64,000 nucleotides of DNA from Podarcis melisellensis (lineage: Eukaryota). The translations under genes were made by a program, and so were the position numbers. The stretch is from assembly GCA_964234715.1 (NCBI GenBank), contig OZ174276.1; one strand, 5' to 3'. The notes beneath the pieces were generated by a model. It was not told the DNA's origin. It searched no databases and saw nothing but the letters and a program-made list of their open reading frames with translations. Positions 1 through 8,211 of this stretch are shown piece by piece; position 1 is the first letter of the stretch; each line of letters opens with the position of its first letter.

Positions 1-1807
1 CTAATTAGCAAATAAACTACAAAAGATCCTAATCACAGTTCTTCCAGGTCAAGGCTGGTTTGGACCTTAGAATGCATTCATTTCCCAGAAGCAATTGATG
101 CAGTGGTATTTCCCTGGTAAATTTCCAAGGTTGTGGGAAGCAGGGGTGGGAGGTCTGGAGCACACTTTCTGTTAGTTGTGAGACTGAGGCAAGATGGAGG
201 ATAGCCTAAGAGGATCCAACAACTGTCCAGGACACATTTACCACATTTGCTAAACTCCTTCAAATATCAGAACAACAACAAAAAAGCAAACCCATTTACA
301 GACAGCTCTGCATTACCTTTAGCCATCATCCAGTGAGTGAGGAGAAATGAGGCTGGACCACATGGTTATGCTATTGTGATAGATACTATTGGCTGGCAAT
401 CTCACATCCCCAAATGGACCTTTTCTCACTTTTTTGTTACATTTGACATAGAATAATGAATCAGAGACAAGTTTAGTCACATTTATCAGATGGGATGGCA
501 GTGTCTTTGCACTTTATAATCTGGAGCAAATATTTCTGTGCTTTTTGCAGTCATTTTGCCGCTCTGAAACTCTCCAGCTCCTCACAGAAAGAAATGTGTT
601 CTCAAAGACCTCAACAGGTGTGCCAGGCTGGCTCTGAAGCGGAGCTATCTATCCGTGTGCTCCTGACAGATTGTTGCTTCCAAAGCATCATCAGTATTGA
701 TTCTCTATAGTGGTTGCAACAAGCTGGTCTGGTGCTCAGCCTATCAAAAGGAAACCCCTTCAGCCTCCACCCTTCCTAATTTTAGCTTTGTCAGCTTGCC
801 AGCAAGTTTCTACAAAAGATGGGATGCTCATAGTAATCCACTGTATTTGCATGTTCCTCTCCCAATAACCAGAGAAAGTTTAAAGGCCCCAACCTAAGAG
901 AAGCCTGAATCACAGAACACACAGCCACCTTTGTTCTGCTAATCACTGCAGACACATTCCAGCCCTTATCAACTAGTGAATATTAATAATTCATAGAGCG
1001 CCTAAGAAGATTACATCAGCTTTCTGACACATACCACACATACCATGTCCTGTTGTGCCAGCCATCTGTCACTATCTCAAAAGCTGAAGCAACAGAGAAG
1101 GATTTCAAGTCCCATCCCTCCACAGGTTTTTTCCTCTCAGTCTCAGTCTAAAGAGCTAAATACATGCTTTACTGTAGGTTGGAAATGTTCAAAACCTTTT
1201 CCAGACAATTAATTGCCAAAGGCGGAAACCAACTTTCCAGATTGAAACAAGGTCACACCTGCCATTTACTTCCACTCAGCATCCCATAATTACAAATCAA
1301 AGAAACGTAGCAGTCAACAAAGACAGAGGCATTTCACGAAGAGATGCTCAAACATTCCAGGCCATCTCTTGAACTGTTTAAGAGTAATGGTGGTGGCCGA
1401 GAAGCTGCTGTACCCTGAGCATGGCTGGCCTGCCGCGATCCTTGTATAAAGTGATCACAGAACAATATTGCCTCTGCATATCTTGAAAACAATTTCCACA
1501 TTTTGTGATCAGGCTCCCGAAGCGAAGGAAAATGCACGACTCTCCTCCCTTTGCCTTTCTTCCACGTGGACACTTGAGGCCCATGTTGACAGAATATCAG
1601 ATGTAGAAGCCCACATTTTGCATAGTACAGACAAGCAATACAAAGCAAGGAATGGGAAGGCCAGGAGAAGCTAAGCTGCCTTCCAAGAATTAACAGGACC
1701 CAGGAGATGTTAGAAGGAATGCCATTTTAAAAACAACAACAACACATATGATTAGAAGGACCACCCCTCCCGCGCTGATTGTAGGTAAGAGGAAAGAGAG
1801 CACTCAC

Positions 1808-1855
1808 CTCCCTGTTTACTTCTGTCAAGATAGATTGAAACCCTTCGGGCCAGAC
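1808..1855 (-). CDS. RPTOR: Putative RPTOR cassette exon ('28b'), 48 nt, (G)LARRVSIYLDRSKQG
   Basis: Acceptor ctgtcttctcacag, donor GAG|gtgagt; length divisible by 3, open in phase 1 matching exon 28; long pyrimidine-rich upstream tract with branchpoint-like motifs. No transcript evidence. Confidence 0.72.
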
Positions 1856-2932
1856 CTGTGAGAAGACAGGGATTAAGGGGTTGATGCTAAGGGTAAGTTG
1901 GTCAGCCAAAGCAAAACAAATCTTAAAAAAAGGATTAGGAAAAGCAACCCAAAAGGAACAGAAAAGAACACAGTTAGAGAGAAGCAGTAGCGGCAGAGAG
2001 GCCTCCATTCAGGGAAGGAAGGAAGGAAGGAAGGAAGACAAGTAGGTTGATCACAGCAGCCATCCTAGGAAGCCATTAGCCATGAGGAGGAAAGCAAGAC
2101 CGGTCTTCTTTTGCTCATGTGCACAAATCCCACTCAGAAGGGCCCTGCTATACTCTATCTAGAATGAAAGGCACCTCGCTGTCAGTGGAAGAGTGAGAAA
2201 TGAAAGCTGCGCTCCAAATGACCCCTCACCAAAGAAAAACCTACAAAGAAACCCAACACCCTGTGAGGGGAGAGGTGAATCCAAACAGCTAAGCGATGTG
2301 CTGCTCAGGCCTCACTGAGCCACCAGCTCAGCTGTGAAACAATACAGTAGGCAGCACACTTCAATGATTTGCTAATGAGCACTCATTCAGAGAGGAAGGA
2401 CAATTTACAGAGGACTCTGCTCAAACAACTGTTTAAGTGGGGGAAATTAGCAGTACAAGGGGATTCATTTGAAGTCATCAGGAAGAAGGCTGGATAATGA
2501 GAGGAGCTGCAGGGTGGCGGCAGCAGCTCAGTTGTTAAGGACAGGGCAGCTTAGGCACATGCTGAGCCTAGCTGCCCTTGGTTTGCCCAAGGAACTCTAG
2601 AAAGAGAACCTGCTTGACCTTTCCCAGGGCAGGACTTGCAAAGGCCACTCTCAAACACCATGGCTCACCTTTAAAACAAGCCCCAAAACTGGCAGGAAGT
2701 AAAGCAGTGGTGATGGATGCCCGCAAAGAGGTCAGAGATGCACTAGTTGGAGGTGACAGCCCATTCTCTCCATTGTAAGGCATCACTTGCTCTGTACGGT
2801 AGTCTGAGAGCACCAGCCAGAGTCCTTTATTTATTTACATTTATATGCCACCTTTTTTCTCCTTGGCTAGATGGACTGCCTATCTGACCTCAGGGAAAGA
2901 TGTTCCTTATGCTGTTGCTTTTCCTTTCTCTT

Positions 2933-3162
2933 CAGTGTGGTGTAGTGGTTAAGAGCGGTAGTCTCGTAATCTGGTGAACCGGGTTTGCGTCTCCGCTCCT
3001 CCACATGCAGCTGCTGGGTGACACTTCTCTGAAGTCTCTCAGCCTCACTCACCTCACAGAGTGTTTGTTGTGGGGGAGGAAGGGAAAAGGAGGTTGTTAG
3101 CTGCTTTGAGACTCCTTAGGGTAGTGATAAAGTGGGATATCAAATCCAAAACTCTCTTCTTC
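2933..3162 (+). mobile_element. tRNA-derived squamate SINE with (TTC)-rich tail (Squam3-like)
   Basis: A-box TGGTGTAGTGG, degenerate B-box, gctgggtgac core and tcttcttct tail. Family name tentative. Confidence 0.72.
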
Positions 3163-5501
3163 TCTCTTCCTAATTCTAACTGGTAATACACAGGATGTGG
3201 TTATGCTGATGTGAACTACCATGTCCTTCCCCTACCAGTCTACAGTCTGACCTAGGAGCCTGCATTATGCTTTCTGTTAAACCACTCATCTTAAACATCC
3301 TCTTTGTAAAAAAGAAAAGAAAAAGGTCACTCTGCCTATTCCATGTGAAACCTCGCATGCAATCTACACAAACCAGGACCTTTTGAAATAGTGTCTGAAA
3401 CCACAAAACGGACACCTGTGGGAGTAGCATCCTCTCAGGAATCACCTTGAGACTGTAACCTACTGAAGCACTAACTTGCACAAGGCTTGCCCTGCATTTA
3501 TATCTTTCACATTTCCCCATGTCACCCTTCTCACTGGTTCAACTGCAAACAAAACCATCTAAAAGAGAACCACTCCACACACAAAGAAAATCCTGGAGAA
3601 TTAAGGGGCTTGCTTAGTCCTGGTCCATCTCTTGCTATGAGGAACAGACCAAGTCAGAATGACAAATCTGCTTGGCCAAAACAGCCAAGTGCTGAATTTA
3701 TTCGGATGTTCATTTCAGCAACTGCCCCCACCTCCTTCGGAGTGGTACAATATGAACTGCGCCTGCACTATTTCTGGTGGTGCCTGGGTGCTTTCATTAA
3801 AATGGTCATTATATCAACACCAATTCAGCACCGACCTAGAGCTGACTCATAATAATGTGCATAGATTCTGTGGTTCCCTCCACCCCCTGCCTGATTCTCT
3901 AGTGCTCACACAGCTGTTCTAATCTTCACATGATCCAAAATATTACGACTTTGCATAATGTGAAATTTGCTCCTGTCTTTCTTAGACCTAATCCTTTAAC
4001 TTTTAGATGGACAGTGAATGTATTTGGTGGATTTAAGCCAGGAAAGGGCATAACCAATGCTAAGGAAAAAACCTGTTTGCTGTTGCAGAACAAAGTCAGT
4101 ACAGAGCTGAAGCCTTTGAGTTTCCTATATATAGGCACATGAATGTTTTGCTGGAGAATTACACACACTTTTATAAGATTCCTTTCCTTCCATCCCTCTT
4201 AATCCACTCCAGCCTGTTCTTCACAAATGAGAAAGCTTGCACAAAGAGGTCAGGTCCACCCACTCCTTTAAGTGTGTCCTCTGCTCCTGCTGTTCATTCA
4301 ATCCCCTTGTGAGGTCAGTGACCCATTTTTCATCAAGATGATTACATCACCAACTGAGGATTAGAAGATGGAGGAGAAAGATGGAGGAAAAACAACCAAC
4401 AGCAAAGGATGCTAAAATTCAGGTATCATTCCACTAGCATGTAAAAAGAGGAAGGAAGAGGAAGCACCATACAGAAAATCGAGGCCACAAGCACAATGGT
4501 CTCAGAGAGACAGGAGTCAGATTACAGCCCTGTGCCAAACTGCACCAGCAGTCTCCACAGCAAAGGCCAGCACTTCTAACAACAATCTCATTTCTACAGA
4601 GGACTCATTTAATTCACCCTGCACCTTTGCACAGAGTGAATTTAACTAACCCTCTAATTCCCGCAGCAATATGCATAGGTAGTAACAAAATCAAGGACCG
4701 AAAGAGAAATTTAATAGTTCTGTAAAGGAAGCACAATCACTCTCCCTTAGTGCTGTTTCTTATTCACCGAAATAGTGAGGAAATTACCGGGAGAAAATCC
4801 AAGCCATAGTGGAAATCAGAAACAACAGTCACAAGGGACCTGGGCAACTCTTCTCTACAGAAATCATTTGCTCATGCTATAGAAAAGTGTGAAAAGGGGA
4901 TGACCAGGAACAGCTGATCTTTACTATCAAAAAACAAACCATTGCCCATTACCCAGACTAGGCTGCATCTGTAAATCAATGCTTCATGGGTATATTTTTT
5001 ATGTCAACATGTTGGTTGGCTCTGCTTTCATTACTCTTACACATTTTATTTTTTTATGATGCCTGAATGTTATTTAAAAGGAGTTGTTACATGGGCAGGT
5101 TTTTCTTGTCTTCTCATCTTTTGAACTGCAGCCACAGACAACAGCAGTGGCAGACACTTCAAAGGAAGAGCCAAGGATACAATTGGATTTGACTGCACAC
5201 ACCAGCCTCTGCTGGAGTCCAAGGGTTAAGGCAACATTTTATTGAACTGAATCAATGAAATGCCACTTCTCTTCAGCCTCAAACTTTTTTTTTTGTTGTG
5301 ACTCAAAACAATAAAAATGAATTATTTTAAGAGAAGAGATGATAGCTAAACAGAGTATATTTTTAGCCAAAAACGGTCACTCTCATTCAGAATTTATAAC
5401 AAAGGGCTTATAGGCTATTAACATCAGAACTGAGGTATCAGAGTACATAAATATATATCAAGTTGTGTCCATGTGATAGCCTTATCTTAAACCTTTTAAA
5501 G

Positions 5502-5638
5502 CAGGATTAGGGAACCTGTGACCCTGCAAACGTTGATACACTACAACTCCCATCATCCCTGAACCATTGGTCATGCTGGCAGGGGCTAATGGGAGTTGAA
5601 GTTCAACATTAACTGGAAGGCCACAAGTTCGTCACCTA
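5502..5638. mobile_element. Palindromic hAT MITE
   Basis: ctacaactcccatcatccctga...tgggagttgaagt core; TSD (t/c)tttaaag. Confidence 0.72.
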
Positions 5639-5655
5639 CTTTAAAGGAATTACAC

Positions 5656-5778
5656 TAAGGTTACCAGATTTTTTTCAATGAATCTGGGGACACCTTTCAA
5701 CTTCAATGGATTTTGTATGGGGACTGATTTGTAAATCCAGGGACTGTCCCCGGGAAATGGGGACGTCTGGTAACCTAA
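5656..5778. mobile_element. Short hAT (Blackjack-like) non-autonomous element
   Basis: TIR aggttaccaga/tctggtaacct, 8-bp TSD aattaca(c/t), gggac/gtccc internal motifs. Confidence 0.7.
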
Positions 5779-6183
5779 AATTACATGGGTTAGAAAACTA
5801 CATTTCCAGTTTAACTTACTGATTGTTGAGAGAAGCAATGCATTGGCTATCAGACTATGAGTGTCTTAGACGAATATTTTCAAAATTTAGTTATGAACTT
5901 TGCTTGTCTATTTTTGTGAAGCAAAATGTAACACAGGATTTATCCCACTTTCTTTGGACTTCAAAAGCCAGCTCTCAAATATTATTGCCAGCGTTGGACA
6001 CAGTATCATTAATATCAGCCTCCAGCAAACTGGTGCCCTCTACATGTTTTGCACTACAGTTCCAATCACCCCTAAGCCTTGGCCACACTGATTGGGGATG
6101 ATGGGGTTGGCTGCTTTATACGTATTCAATTTAAATTAGCCTTTTTGCTTAGTGCATTTGTACTTGAACTATTTGCTAATGTA

Positions 6184-6187
<4 letters not shown>

Positions 6188-6225
<38 letters not shown>
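6188..6225. repeat. (TG)n microsatellite
   Basis: Seen directly. Confidence 0.95.
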
Positions 6226-6226
<1 letters not shown>

Positions 6227-8106
6227 CACAAACCTTACAAGTATGCTAAAGTTAAGATAATTTCTTTCTAGATTTTCTGACTGCAAATTCTGGATAAATT
6301 CATTGGTTTCGGTGGGGATAAGTAATAAAAATAACAGAAAAATGGGAGAAGAGTGTGTAGTGGAGCATAAGGAAGTCTAACAAAGTTCTAATTTCTCCTA
6401 CGATGACTAATTCAGTGCTTGTTTTGATTGATACACACACACACACACACACACCACGCTAATATTTTTGGTGTGCCTACTTTGCCCCAAGCAGCACATA
6501 TTAAGTCTACCTACTGGGTAATCCAGCACTGGCTATGCTGATTCTCAAATATGTGCTTTCAAGATGCTTTAGGGTGACATGTGCTTAATGAACATCAAGT
6601 AAGCTTTAAAGCTTGGTAAAGGGACTGTGAAGACAAGACCTGGAGAGATCAACAAGATTTGACTTTGGTACTCTACTCTCCACCCAAGGCAGCAGAGGGA
6701 ATACAAGAACCGCAAGATAAGCATCTTTTAGCTGCTTCCCCATTGCTCTTATTGACAATATTCCTGTAAATGGCAGGATTTCACTCACAGCAATGTTTAC
6801 AGCAGACATCTAACTTCCCATACTTTATGATCGGTTCTGTGCACATTACAGAAGCTTGGGTTTGCAGCAGCTGCACCTCAAATTTCAGGCTACCTGGCCC
6901 AAAAGGAAGAGGAACAGAATCACCGTAATATTCTTTCCATGGAAAGAACCAGAGGAAGGTCTGTCAAAGTTTTAAGATCTGAGTGAGGCATCGTCTGTGA
7001 ATTCCAATGAATAGCTAGAAGGCACATTATACAGGAAAAGCAGGGCAATGTGAGGGAGGAAGAGGACATTAAAGGAAAACATGTAGGCAGCGCTACTGAA
7101 ATGTAAAATTCTTAATGTTCAAAGGGCAGAGATTTTTATTTTGACGTGTCAAACCACTATCACTTACTAGCTATGCCAGCACAAATATTTTAAAGGGAAT
7201 GCAAAGTGCTGGTTTAGCAACAGGAAGTTTTCGAATAAGCGGTTGTCAGGCTTCAGTGCTGAGATGCACAGGTTCAGAAATGAGAACTGTCAGAGCATTA
7301 ATGACTCCTCGTGTCTTGGAAGCAGAGCAAGTATCCTTCATTATCCCATCTGGTATAGTGGTTTTTTTTGGTCACCTAACACTGCACCTCAGTCTCTCAG
7401 CCGGGCTTGTTAAGTGATGGGTTTCTTGTTGACACCTAACCCTGCCTGGATTCTCAACATGTTCGGGACACTCAAATCTATCTGCACTACCATCTTGTAA
7501 ATGTGACGTTTTCACTTGACTTTCCATCCTCCCTCCACAATGAACAGCAGGAAATACTGCAAGCGGTGTGCCCAAGTCAAGGCAGGCTGAGCAAGGTAAT
7601 ATGGGAAGCATGCAGAGCTGGGGCAAAAGGGAACAAGCAAACAAACAAACAAAAAAAAGGATAGTGGCAAGAGGTGAGTTTTTGGGGTAAAACCCCAAAG
7701 TGAGAGGAGGAAACCAGCTGCAATAATGAGTCCAAGGAAGGGCAGTGCTTAGAAAAGCCTCACACAACAATTCTCTATCTAGAAGCAAAAAAGTTAGATC
7801 TGACCTCCAGTGATGAAACTCCAGCGCAGTCCAGGAAGAGAACTCACCTGTACTCCTCTGTTCAGCACTATGAAAAAGATTGCATCTATTCCCCATCTGG
7901 CATCTCTGCTTAATCTTACATTTATTATTTGTTTTTAAAGTATTGCAGGGCAGAAATTTCTCACCGGCTCCATCAAGACCAAAACATTGTTAACAAGGTA
8001 TTACTATAGACAGTGAAGACCACTCCATGTTACCTAACCCTGTTCCAAATGATGGCAAACTACTTTTGCCCCTTCAAATCTAGATAGAATGCTAGGTCAT
8101 ACCTAC

Positions 8107-8211
8107 CGCGTGTTGTTGGTAGCATGTCTGACAAGCCCTGCCAGGCCGTTACCATCTCTGGGTTCTTCTCCAGGTCAGCAAAGTTTTTCCACACCCTTAT
8201 AGCACCATCAT
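8107..8211 (-). CDS. RPTOR: RPTOR coding exon (~exon 28), 105 nt, (D)DGAIRVWKNFADLEKNPEMVTAWQGLSDMLPTTR
   Basis: Acceptor ttcaag (AAG), donor gtaggt; ends in phase 1. Confidence 0.97.

Follow-up and report, generated by a model that had tools for sequence, protein, structure and literature searches.

Does the intron that follows exon 28 of the Raptor gene (RPTOR) contain a small coding exon in lizards and, if so, what would its residues contribute to the protein? Raptor is the substrate-recruiting, lysosome-docking subunit of mTORC1 and is among the most studied signalling scaffolds. The question is raised by a 64,000-nt stretch of Podarcis melisellensis DNA (contig OZ174276.1; hereafter the window), in which an earlier note had proposed, from the letters alone, a 48-nt in-frame cassette exon that adds a kinase motif to the Raptor WD40 domain.

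RPTOR lies on the minus strand of the window, and with gecko Raptor as a tblastn query residues ~498-1124 were found in 14 exon-sized blocks running from 58703 to 8105. The RRVSS motif equivalent to S791/S792, which the earlier note had mentioned, was found in squamate Raptor, and its exon is at about 48313-48065 here. Exon 28 (8211 to 8107, minus strand) encodes ...DDGAIRVWKNFADLEKNPEMVTAWQGLSDMLPTTR and the first base of the next codon; its whole codons are identical at 34/34 positions to residues 1090-1123 of human Raptor in solved mTORC1 structures. The 3' end of this exon reads ...ATGCTACCAACAACACGCG/gtaggt (...ACACGCG/gtaggt), with the donor at 8106-8101 and one base left over, i.e. phase 1. 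An intron of 6251 nt (1856 to 8106, minus strand) leads from there to the cassette exon (1855 to 1808, minus strand), which is 48 nt long and frame-preserving, with its acceptor AG at 1857-1856 and its donor GT at 1807-1806. The minus strand reads ...ccctgtcttctcacag/48 nt/gtgagtgct in this region, giving a cacag acceptor and a GAG/gtgagt donor. In the phase set by exon 28 the cassette is open and reads G-LARRVSIYLDRSKQG-G with the split codons, a net gain of 16 residues, and the cassette peptide is GLARRVSIYLDRSKQG. The coordinates, splice sites, phase and open frame given in the earlier note were correct in every element when read on the minus strand. Exon 29 (GAGMVVDWEQ...) was not found within the window.

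The cassette is flanked on both sides by conserved intron sequence. The upstream block (1856 to 1981, minus strand) holds a polypyrimidine tract, a candidate branch point (cttaat, about -22 to -17; ctgac in the related contig L001) and the shared blocks TTTCTAAK, TTTTAAG and TGGCTG, and the C/U-rich tract of about 150 nt with ctctaac, cctaat, gctgac and cttaat that had been described 5' of the cassette is present. The downstream block (1754 to 1807, minus strand) comprises the donor GTGAGTGCT, a C/U-rich stretch and a G-run. A (CCTT)n microsatellite (2002 to 2047, minus strand) lies 5' of the upstream block, marking its edge and falling outside the functional unit; it is absent at the matching position in Gekko and in contigs L004 and L001.

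Evidence that the cassette is spliced into RPTOR came from the assembled contigs of run X1, which originates from a related lizard. A 90-nt contig of depth 16.3 matches 1807-1856 without any difference and then departs from the genome on both sides; depth is 2-4.5 in adjacent pieces of the intron from this run. Its 28 overhanging letters have a single match in the window, on the plus strand at 8108-8135, precisely where exon 28 ends, and the other 12 letters, when reverse-complemented, read (G)GA GCA GGG ATG GT, which encodes G-A-G-M-V, the start of exon 29. Because the overhangs are the end of exon 28 and the start of exon 29, the contig represents a molecule in which exon 28, the cassette and exon 29 are joined with the predicted junctions exact, including the junction 8107 to 1855. 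The in-frame joining that had been proposed was therefore seen in this contig, which is presumed to be RNA-derived. The search for spliced contigs covered 1400-2400 of the window, and the span from exon 28 to the cassette is longer than this search could take in, with the result that a junction would be visible only as an overhang. It should be noted that RNA support in lizards consists of one 90-nt contig, found in a single run that is presumed to be of RNA, and a DNA retrocopy is formally conceivable as its source. Two raw RNA-seq runs carrying the species label of X1 (X23 and X24) had 0 reads on 1400-2400 and thus provide no test of splicing.

We compared the cassette with sequences from other species to determine whether its reading frame and splice sites are conserved. 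In a named assembly of Gekko kuhli (L003), exon 28 is followed about 7 kb on by an exon which encodes the identical peptide and differs at one synonymous base. The peptide is also identical in three reptile- or bird-like contigs, L001, L004 and L009. L004 was the sole match of a degenerate-peptide pattern scan of JGI metagenomes; its exon is identical at 48/48 positions, and its alignment to the window spans only 239 nt (1754-1991). In L009, from Logan, exon 28 and an intact cassette with a single synonymous change are separated by 3.9 kb, and this contig aligns lengthwise to L004 and L001 at about 69-75%. The exon of L001, also from Logan, shows six differences, all of which are in third positions and synonymous. 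Across the four sequences included in the count (the window, Gekko, L004 and L001), 7/7 substitutions were synonymous in the predicted frame, compared with 1/7 and 0/7 when read in either other frame (P about 7e-5), and the codon-pattern check suggested by the earlier note was in this way borne out among relatives. Identity between lacertid and gecko was 92-100% over 1981-1781 vs 72-76% in the alignable remainder of the intron.

The cassette was also found outside the reptile-like sequences. An automated partial UniProt model from the salmonid Hucho hucho (A0A4W5N6E9) reads ...LLLTATDDGALRIWKNFADQRNPEMVTAWQGLSDMLPTTR-GLARRVSISLDRSKGQG-, i.e. PTTR-GLARRVSISLDRSKGQG, joining exons 27-28 to a version of the cassette whose length, inferred from the protein, is 51 nt. 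This peptide keeps 14/16 of the cassette residues, and the earlier suspicion that automated gene models of non-mammalian vertebrates might already include the exon was well founded. L008, from an ENA metagenome assembly, contains exon 28 followed after 3.6 kb by an intact exon of 48 nt, bounded by AG/GT, which reads GLARKVSIFLDRSKQG, with two conservative replacements in addition to synonymous changes. The AG acceptor and GT donor are kept in Gekko, L004, L009, L001 and L008, the length is always a multiple of 3 (48 nt, or 51 in the salmonid) with no stop, and the conserved peptide core is G-L-A-R-R/K-V-S-I-Y/F/S-L-D-R-S-K. Judged from these comparisons, the cassette peptide is evidently under purifying selection as a protein, and the cassette, being present from teleost to squamates, predates the split between ray-finned fish and tetrapods.

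Open segments between an AG and a GT are abundant in introns, and a single 90-nt contig makes up all of the RNA support in the clade, both of which would suit a chance pseudo-exon or noise from splicing or assembly. However, both junctions of that contig are exact, splice sites and frame are intact in five independent DNA orthologues, the peptide recurs in a teleost model and every scored substitution is synonymous, and we therefore give the idea of a pseudo-exon or noise almost no chance of being correct. The earlier note would have been abandoned had there been neither junction reads nor conservation; on the first count the junctions in X1 were found to be exact and on the second the orthologues were found to be conserved. 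The cassette is a genuine RPTOR exon which gives rise to an uncharacterised isoform.

Protein databases contained very little of this sequence. A search with the cassette ORF against a set of 5.8 billion proteins returned one genomic ORF and nothing else, and the Hucho hucho fragment, when the search was restricted to the cassette region, matched only itself. A carp contig (L002) contains 8 kb 3' of exon 28 without the cassette and also without exon 29, making it uninformative on loss, and another contig (L005) stops directly after exon 28. We also found three gene models which read through the exon 28 donor into the intron and are truncated mis-annotations of RPTOR: KAL8163449.1 from Gekko kuhli (P0016), which ends in PTTRVTSG; A0ACB8EKE6 from Sphaerodactylus townsendi (P0015), which ends in PTTRGRAKW...; and KTF90488.1 from Cyprinus carpio (P0044), which ends in PTTRGLLSD....

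Selection on the peptide does not account for all of the conservation. The exon DNA is identical at 47-48/48 positions among the lacertid, the gecko, L004 and L009, synonymous sites included, and since these sites are almost frozen, part of the constraint is on the RNA and not on the peptide. Near-frozen synonymous sites and flanks in several lineages amount to an added RNA-level constraint, as is usual for regulated exons, to go by the alignments. Inclusion is probably regulated, because the intron flanks are strongly conserved, C/U-rich tracts lie on both sides and there is a G-run downstream. It may also be tissue-specific, as the earlier note supposed. The G-run is common to all five orthologues at about +30 to +45 (1771-1761 in the window, +37 to +47), as are UGCU motifs upstream of the cassette. 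A PTB-like UCUU is present at -11 in 4/5 sequences, and the lacertid, the gecko, L004 and L009, but not L001, have further copies downstream (+8 to +18).

Conserved microexons of 51 nt or less, among them those regulated by RBFOX and PTBP1 (PMC4317164), lengthen surface loops of signalling proteins by a few residues. The cassette resembles them in being 48 nt long, a multiple of 3, and placed in a surface loop of an interaction domain, with conserved flanks and neighbouring C/U-rich (PTB-like) tracts, and it falls within the size range of the microexon programme (51 nt or less with conserved flanks). It differs from them in that GCAUG is missing from the 200 nt downstream in all five sequences and no UGC lies near the 3' splice site, the nearest copy being at -58 in 4/5 sequences and, in L001, at -39. 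The flanks of the five orthologues contained no RBFOX or QKI site, and the cassette is at most a putative member of the neural microexon programme.

Such strong conservation raises the question of whether the block is mainly an RNA- or DNA-level element, i.e. a regulator of splicing or expression or an ultraconserved element, from which the exon is occasionally included without a role for the protein. The near-identity of exon and flanks in the lacertid, the gecko, L004 and L009 would fit this, as would the many small runs, from seven organisms, which hold just the roughly 180-nt core. These comprise 14 small contig sets that contain about 14-23% of the words of window 1500-2300, and in run X5 an unspliced contig of 492 nt matches 1750-1929 alone and diverges on both sides. 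The region 1750-1929 behaves like an ultraconserved locus and was perhaps caught by sequence-capture data sets. A possible hairpin points in the same direction: within 1812-1871 (minus strand), the 3' end of the exon (AGAAG..ACAGGG) could pair with the polypyrimidine tract CCCTGTCTTCT, and L001 has changed both sides of one pair, from U-A to C-G, which is one compensatory change. Such a hairpin could mask the acceptor, although the evidence is too little for more than a lead. Yet the fold of the cassette region is ordinary, being no more stable than shuffles (z = -0.15), and L008 breaks 2/5 pairs of one stem. The divergence that does exist also respects the frame, with 6/6 changes synonymous in L001, two conservative replacements accompanied by synonymous changes in L008 and 14/16 residues kept in the salmonid, and the length is always a stop-free multiple of 3 (48 or 51 nt). 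We consider it highly improbable that the block is mainly an RNA- or DNA-level element, and favour a coding exon which carries an additional constraint on its RNA.

If the exon is coding, it could either be optional or always be included. A constitutive squamate exon would agree with the splice sites, which are near consensus, and with the fact that the included form was the only form inspected in X1. Against this, the annotation of the gecko Paroedura picta lists the canonical, insert-free Raptor of 1335 aa as isoform X3, and the stub of exon 28 in the X1 contig, 29 letters long, ends about where a 31-mer assembly graph would break if exon 28 were followed by several sequences, a hint at the presence of other forms. 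Constitutive inclusion in squamates is very unlikely in our estimation. Canonical forms without the insert occur in many fish as well. In the search with full-length Raptor, the best 120 of 836 matches were all insert-free, which is due to the fact that the insert lowers the score. We continue with the cassette as a probably optional exon.

We also examined contigs that resemble mammals. L006 and L007 both hold exons 28 and 29, their exon 29 having the LLMSSG signature of named mammals and presumably differing from that of human Raptor, and no recognisable cassette was found in the exon 28-29 intron of either L006 (2.58 kb) or L007 (about 1.07 kb). A candidate cassette relic in the L006 intron scored no better than shuffled sequence and was rejected. 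L010 (Logan, SRR25058269), which is probably mammalian and has pieces of intron in common with L006, contains a 47-nt frameshifted and heavily substituted homologue of the cassette at 3085-3150, with AG and GT kept. Its donor GTGAGTGCC is intact, one base is missing and there are many replacements. This homologue would shift the frame if it were spliced in, and may be a relic or possibly a poison exon. The longest annotated Raptor isoform of the bat Rousettus (isoform X1) has 1332 aa and is without the insert. From these contigs, it seems that the cassette has decayed in at least some mammals; a possible exception is L008, which is similar to the mammal-like group in its donor region. L008 and L010 might themselves be human. 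As the cassette is missing or frameshifted in mammal-like contigs, its function would be dispensable in at least some lineages. Its absence or breakage in the mammal-like sequences examined may be why the field has overlooked the exon, and points to zebrafish, chicken or lizard cells as systems in which to study it.

To place the insertion on the protein we used an AlphaFold2 model of the gecko WD40 region (residues 991-1335), built with 42 aligned Raptors (pLDDT 84, pTM 0.86). The model, which lacks the insert, has 28 strands forming seven four-stranded blades. The insertion point, R1123/G1124, falls in a solvent-exposed, low-confidence loop of 14 residues (pLDDT 65-71) running from strand D of blade 2 (EMVTAWQ) to strand A of blade 3 (VVDW), so that the position on a propeller loop proposed in the earlier note is also where the structure model puts it. 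In standard WD40 topology the D-A loops form the top face, from which it would follow that the blade 2/3 loop is on this face. Blades 6 and 7 are joined by the second long and flexible D-A loop, YYDGFMGQRVGA, which includes F1296/M1297; these are the two most flexible loops in the model. An insert at the identical site was also seen in an older Raptor model of the brachiopod Lingula anatina (UPI00078A42C6, P0003; residues about 840-890). This insert has 50 residues, reads PSTR/GLVSELAMASPLKRSRSFGG.../GSGLVLDWQQ and also contains a basic Ser motif, and the current model, XP_013383806.1, is without it. Such an insert would stem either from an optional exon that arose independently at the homologous intron or from faulty annotation.

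By inclusion of the cassette the flexible blade 2/3 D-A loop would be lengthened by 16 residues, and the longer loop would represent a regulatory handle exclusive to the cassette isoform. The added peptide contains a basic Ser motif, and the RRVS-hydrophobic motif announced in the earlier note is read in the predicted frame. RRVSI is found in the lacertid, Gekko, L004, L009, L001 and Hucho and RKVSI in L008, both being of the PKA type R-R/K-x-S/T-hydrophobic. Every orthologue also has L-A-R-R/K-V-S, with a hydrophobic residue at -5 and a basic residue at -3, which belongs to the LxRxxS class. Kinases of this class include AMPK-related kinases, PKD, CaMK and Chk1, and the proper AMPK motif has a hydrophobic residue at +4. 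The cassette Ser has Asp at +4 and Leu at +3, in disagreement with the AMPK rule for +4. The earlier label of a PKA-type site is correct insofar as RRxS-hydrophobic fits, but it is too narrow, as LxRxxS fits equally and one orthologue has RKVS; the motif alone cannot name the kinase.

Raptor already has a comparable site at S791/S792, of which S792 is the AMPK site. The two are alike in belonging to the same protein and having nearly the same motif, RR(A/V)SSY vs RRVSIY, whereas the S791/S792 site is constitutive and located in the disordered linker before the WD40 domain and the cassette site is probably optional, on a propeller loop and predicted from sequence. Ser791 is phosphorylated by PKA at an RRXS motif (PMC6529218, PMC10691799). 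The Ser of L-A-R-R-V-S-I would most likely be phosphorylated by a basophilic kinase, either of the PKA/AGC type or of the LxRxxS type (AMPK-related, PKD, CaMK). Its phosphorylation would give an extra input to mTORC1 bearing this isoform, resembling the RR(A/V)SSY site at S791/S792.

The cassette may also act at the protein level without phosphorylation, as a 16-residue basic and hydrophobic loop which provides a binding surface for a membrane or a partner on the face of the so-called FM finger. The loop has a net charge of about +3 and the hydrophobic residues L, V, I, Y and L, and its hydrophobic positions are conserved equally with the basic ones. Through its FM finger (F1296/M1297), the RAPTOR WD40 domain makes contact with the lysosomal membrane, and this finger is required for full mTORC1 activity (PMC12448111). 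The WD40 domain is apical and makes no contact with mTOR (PMC5205667). The FM finger and the cassette loop are both long flexible D-A loops of the same propeller and, by topology, of the same face. However, the FM finger is constitutive, hydrophobic and between blades 6 and 7, with a membrane role established by experiment, whereas a membrane role for the cassette loop is speculation. In addition, the two loops are about four blades apart, on roughly opposite rims, and phosphorylation is the better explanation for an invariant Ser in a textbook basophilic motif. We regard a binding surface without phosphorylation as unlikely, and it should also be noted that binding and phosphorylation are not mutually exclusive.

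Taken as a whole, the best explanation, in which we have good confidence, is that of an ancient optional RPTOR exon which inserts into a flexible loop and carries a putative phospho-handle. The phospho-switch part by itself is a tentative proposal to which we would give somewhat less than an even chance. A more elaborate version, in which the basic and hydrophobic loop is switched by phosphorylation, lies beside the FM finger on the side of the propeller that faces the membrane and tunes the docking of mTORC1 at the lysosome, as an ancestral second input from cAMP or energy kinases which has been kept in fish and sauropsids and lost in most mammals, is improbable. If it were true, part of vertebrate mTORC1 regulation would be invisible in mouse and human models.

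In literature searches we found no paper on a Raptor isoform with a WD40 insert or on an RPTOR cassette exon, and the paper on PKA and Raptor mentions no isoform. The cassette is already contained in at least one automated gene model (Hucho hucho), and in the literature found its function is undescribed. A peptide of 16 residues which is almost unchanged from teleost to lizards and which includes a copy of the PKA-Raptor motif argues for an unstudied regulatory layer of mTORC1. Gene annotations should list both forms of RPTOR, and phosphoproteomic searches in non-mammals should add the isoform-specific peptide.

Alternative forms of RPTOR are not limited to this exon. RAPTOR_v2 is a human splice variant without exons 14-17 and, like the cassette isoform, is an alternative form which alters the scaffold while leaving the N-terminal caspase-like domain untouched. 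The two differ in that RAPTOR_v2 skips four exons of the HEAT/armadillo region, whereas the cassette isoform includes a small extra exon in the WD40 domain. A second optional segment, at residue about 876-941, was observed among the Raptor isoforms of otophysan fish (P0181 vs P0180, P0192 vs P0193 and P0120 vs P0119); it consists of 13 residues, TSHRSKRSSSPSS and variants, and is a basic and Ser-rich segment within the Ser-rich linker.
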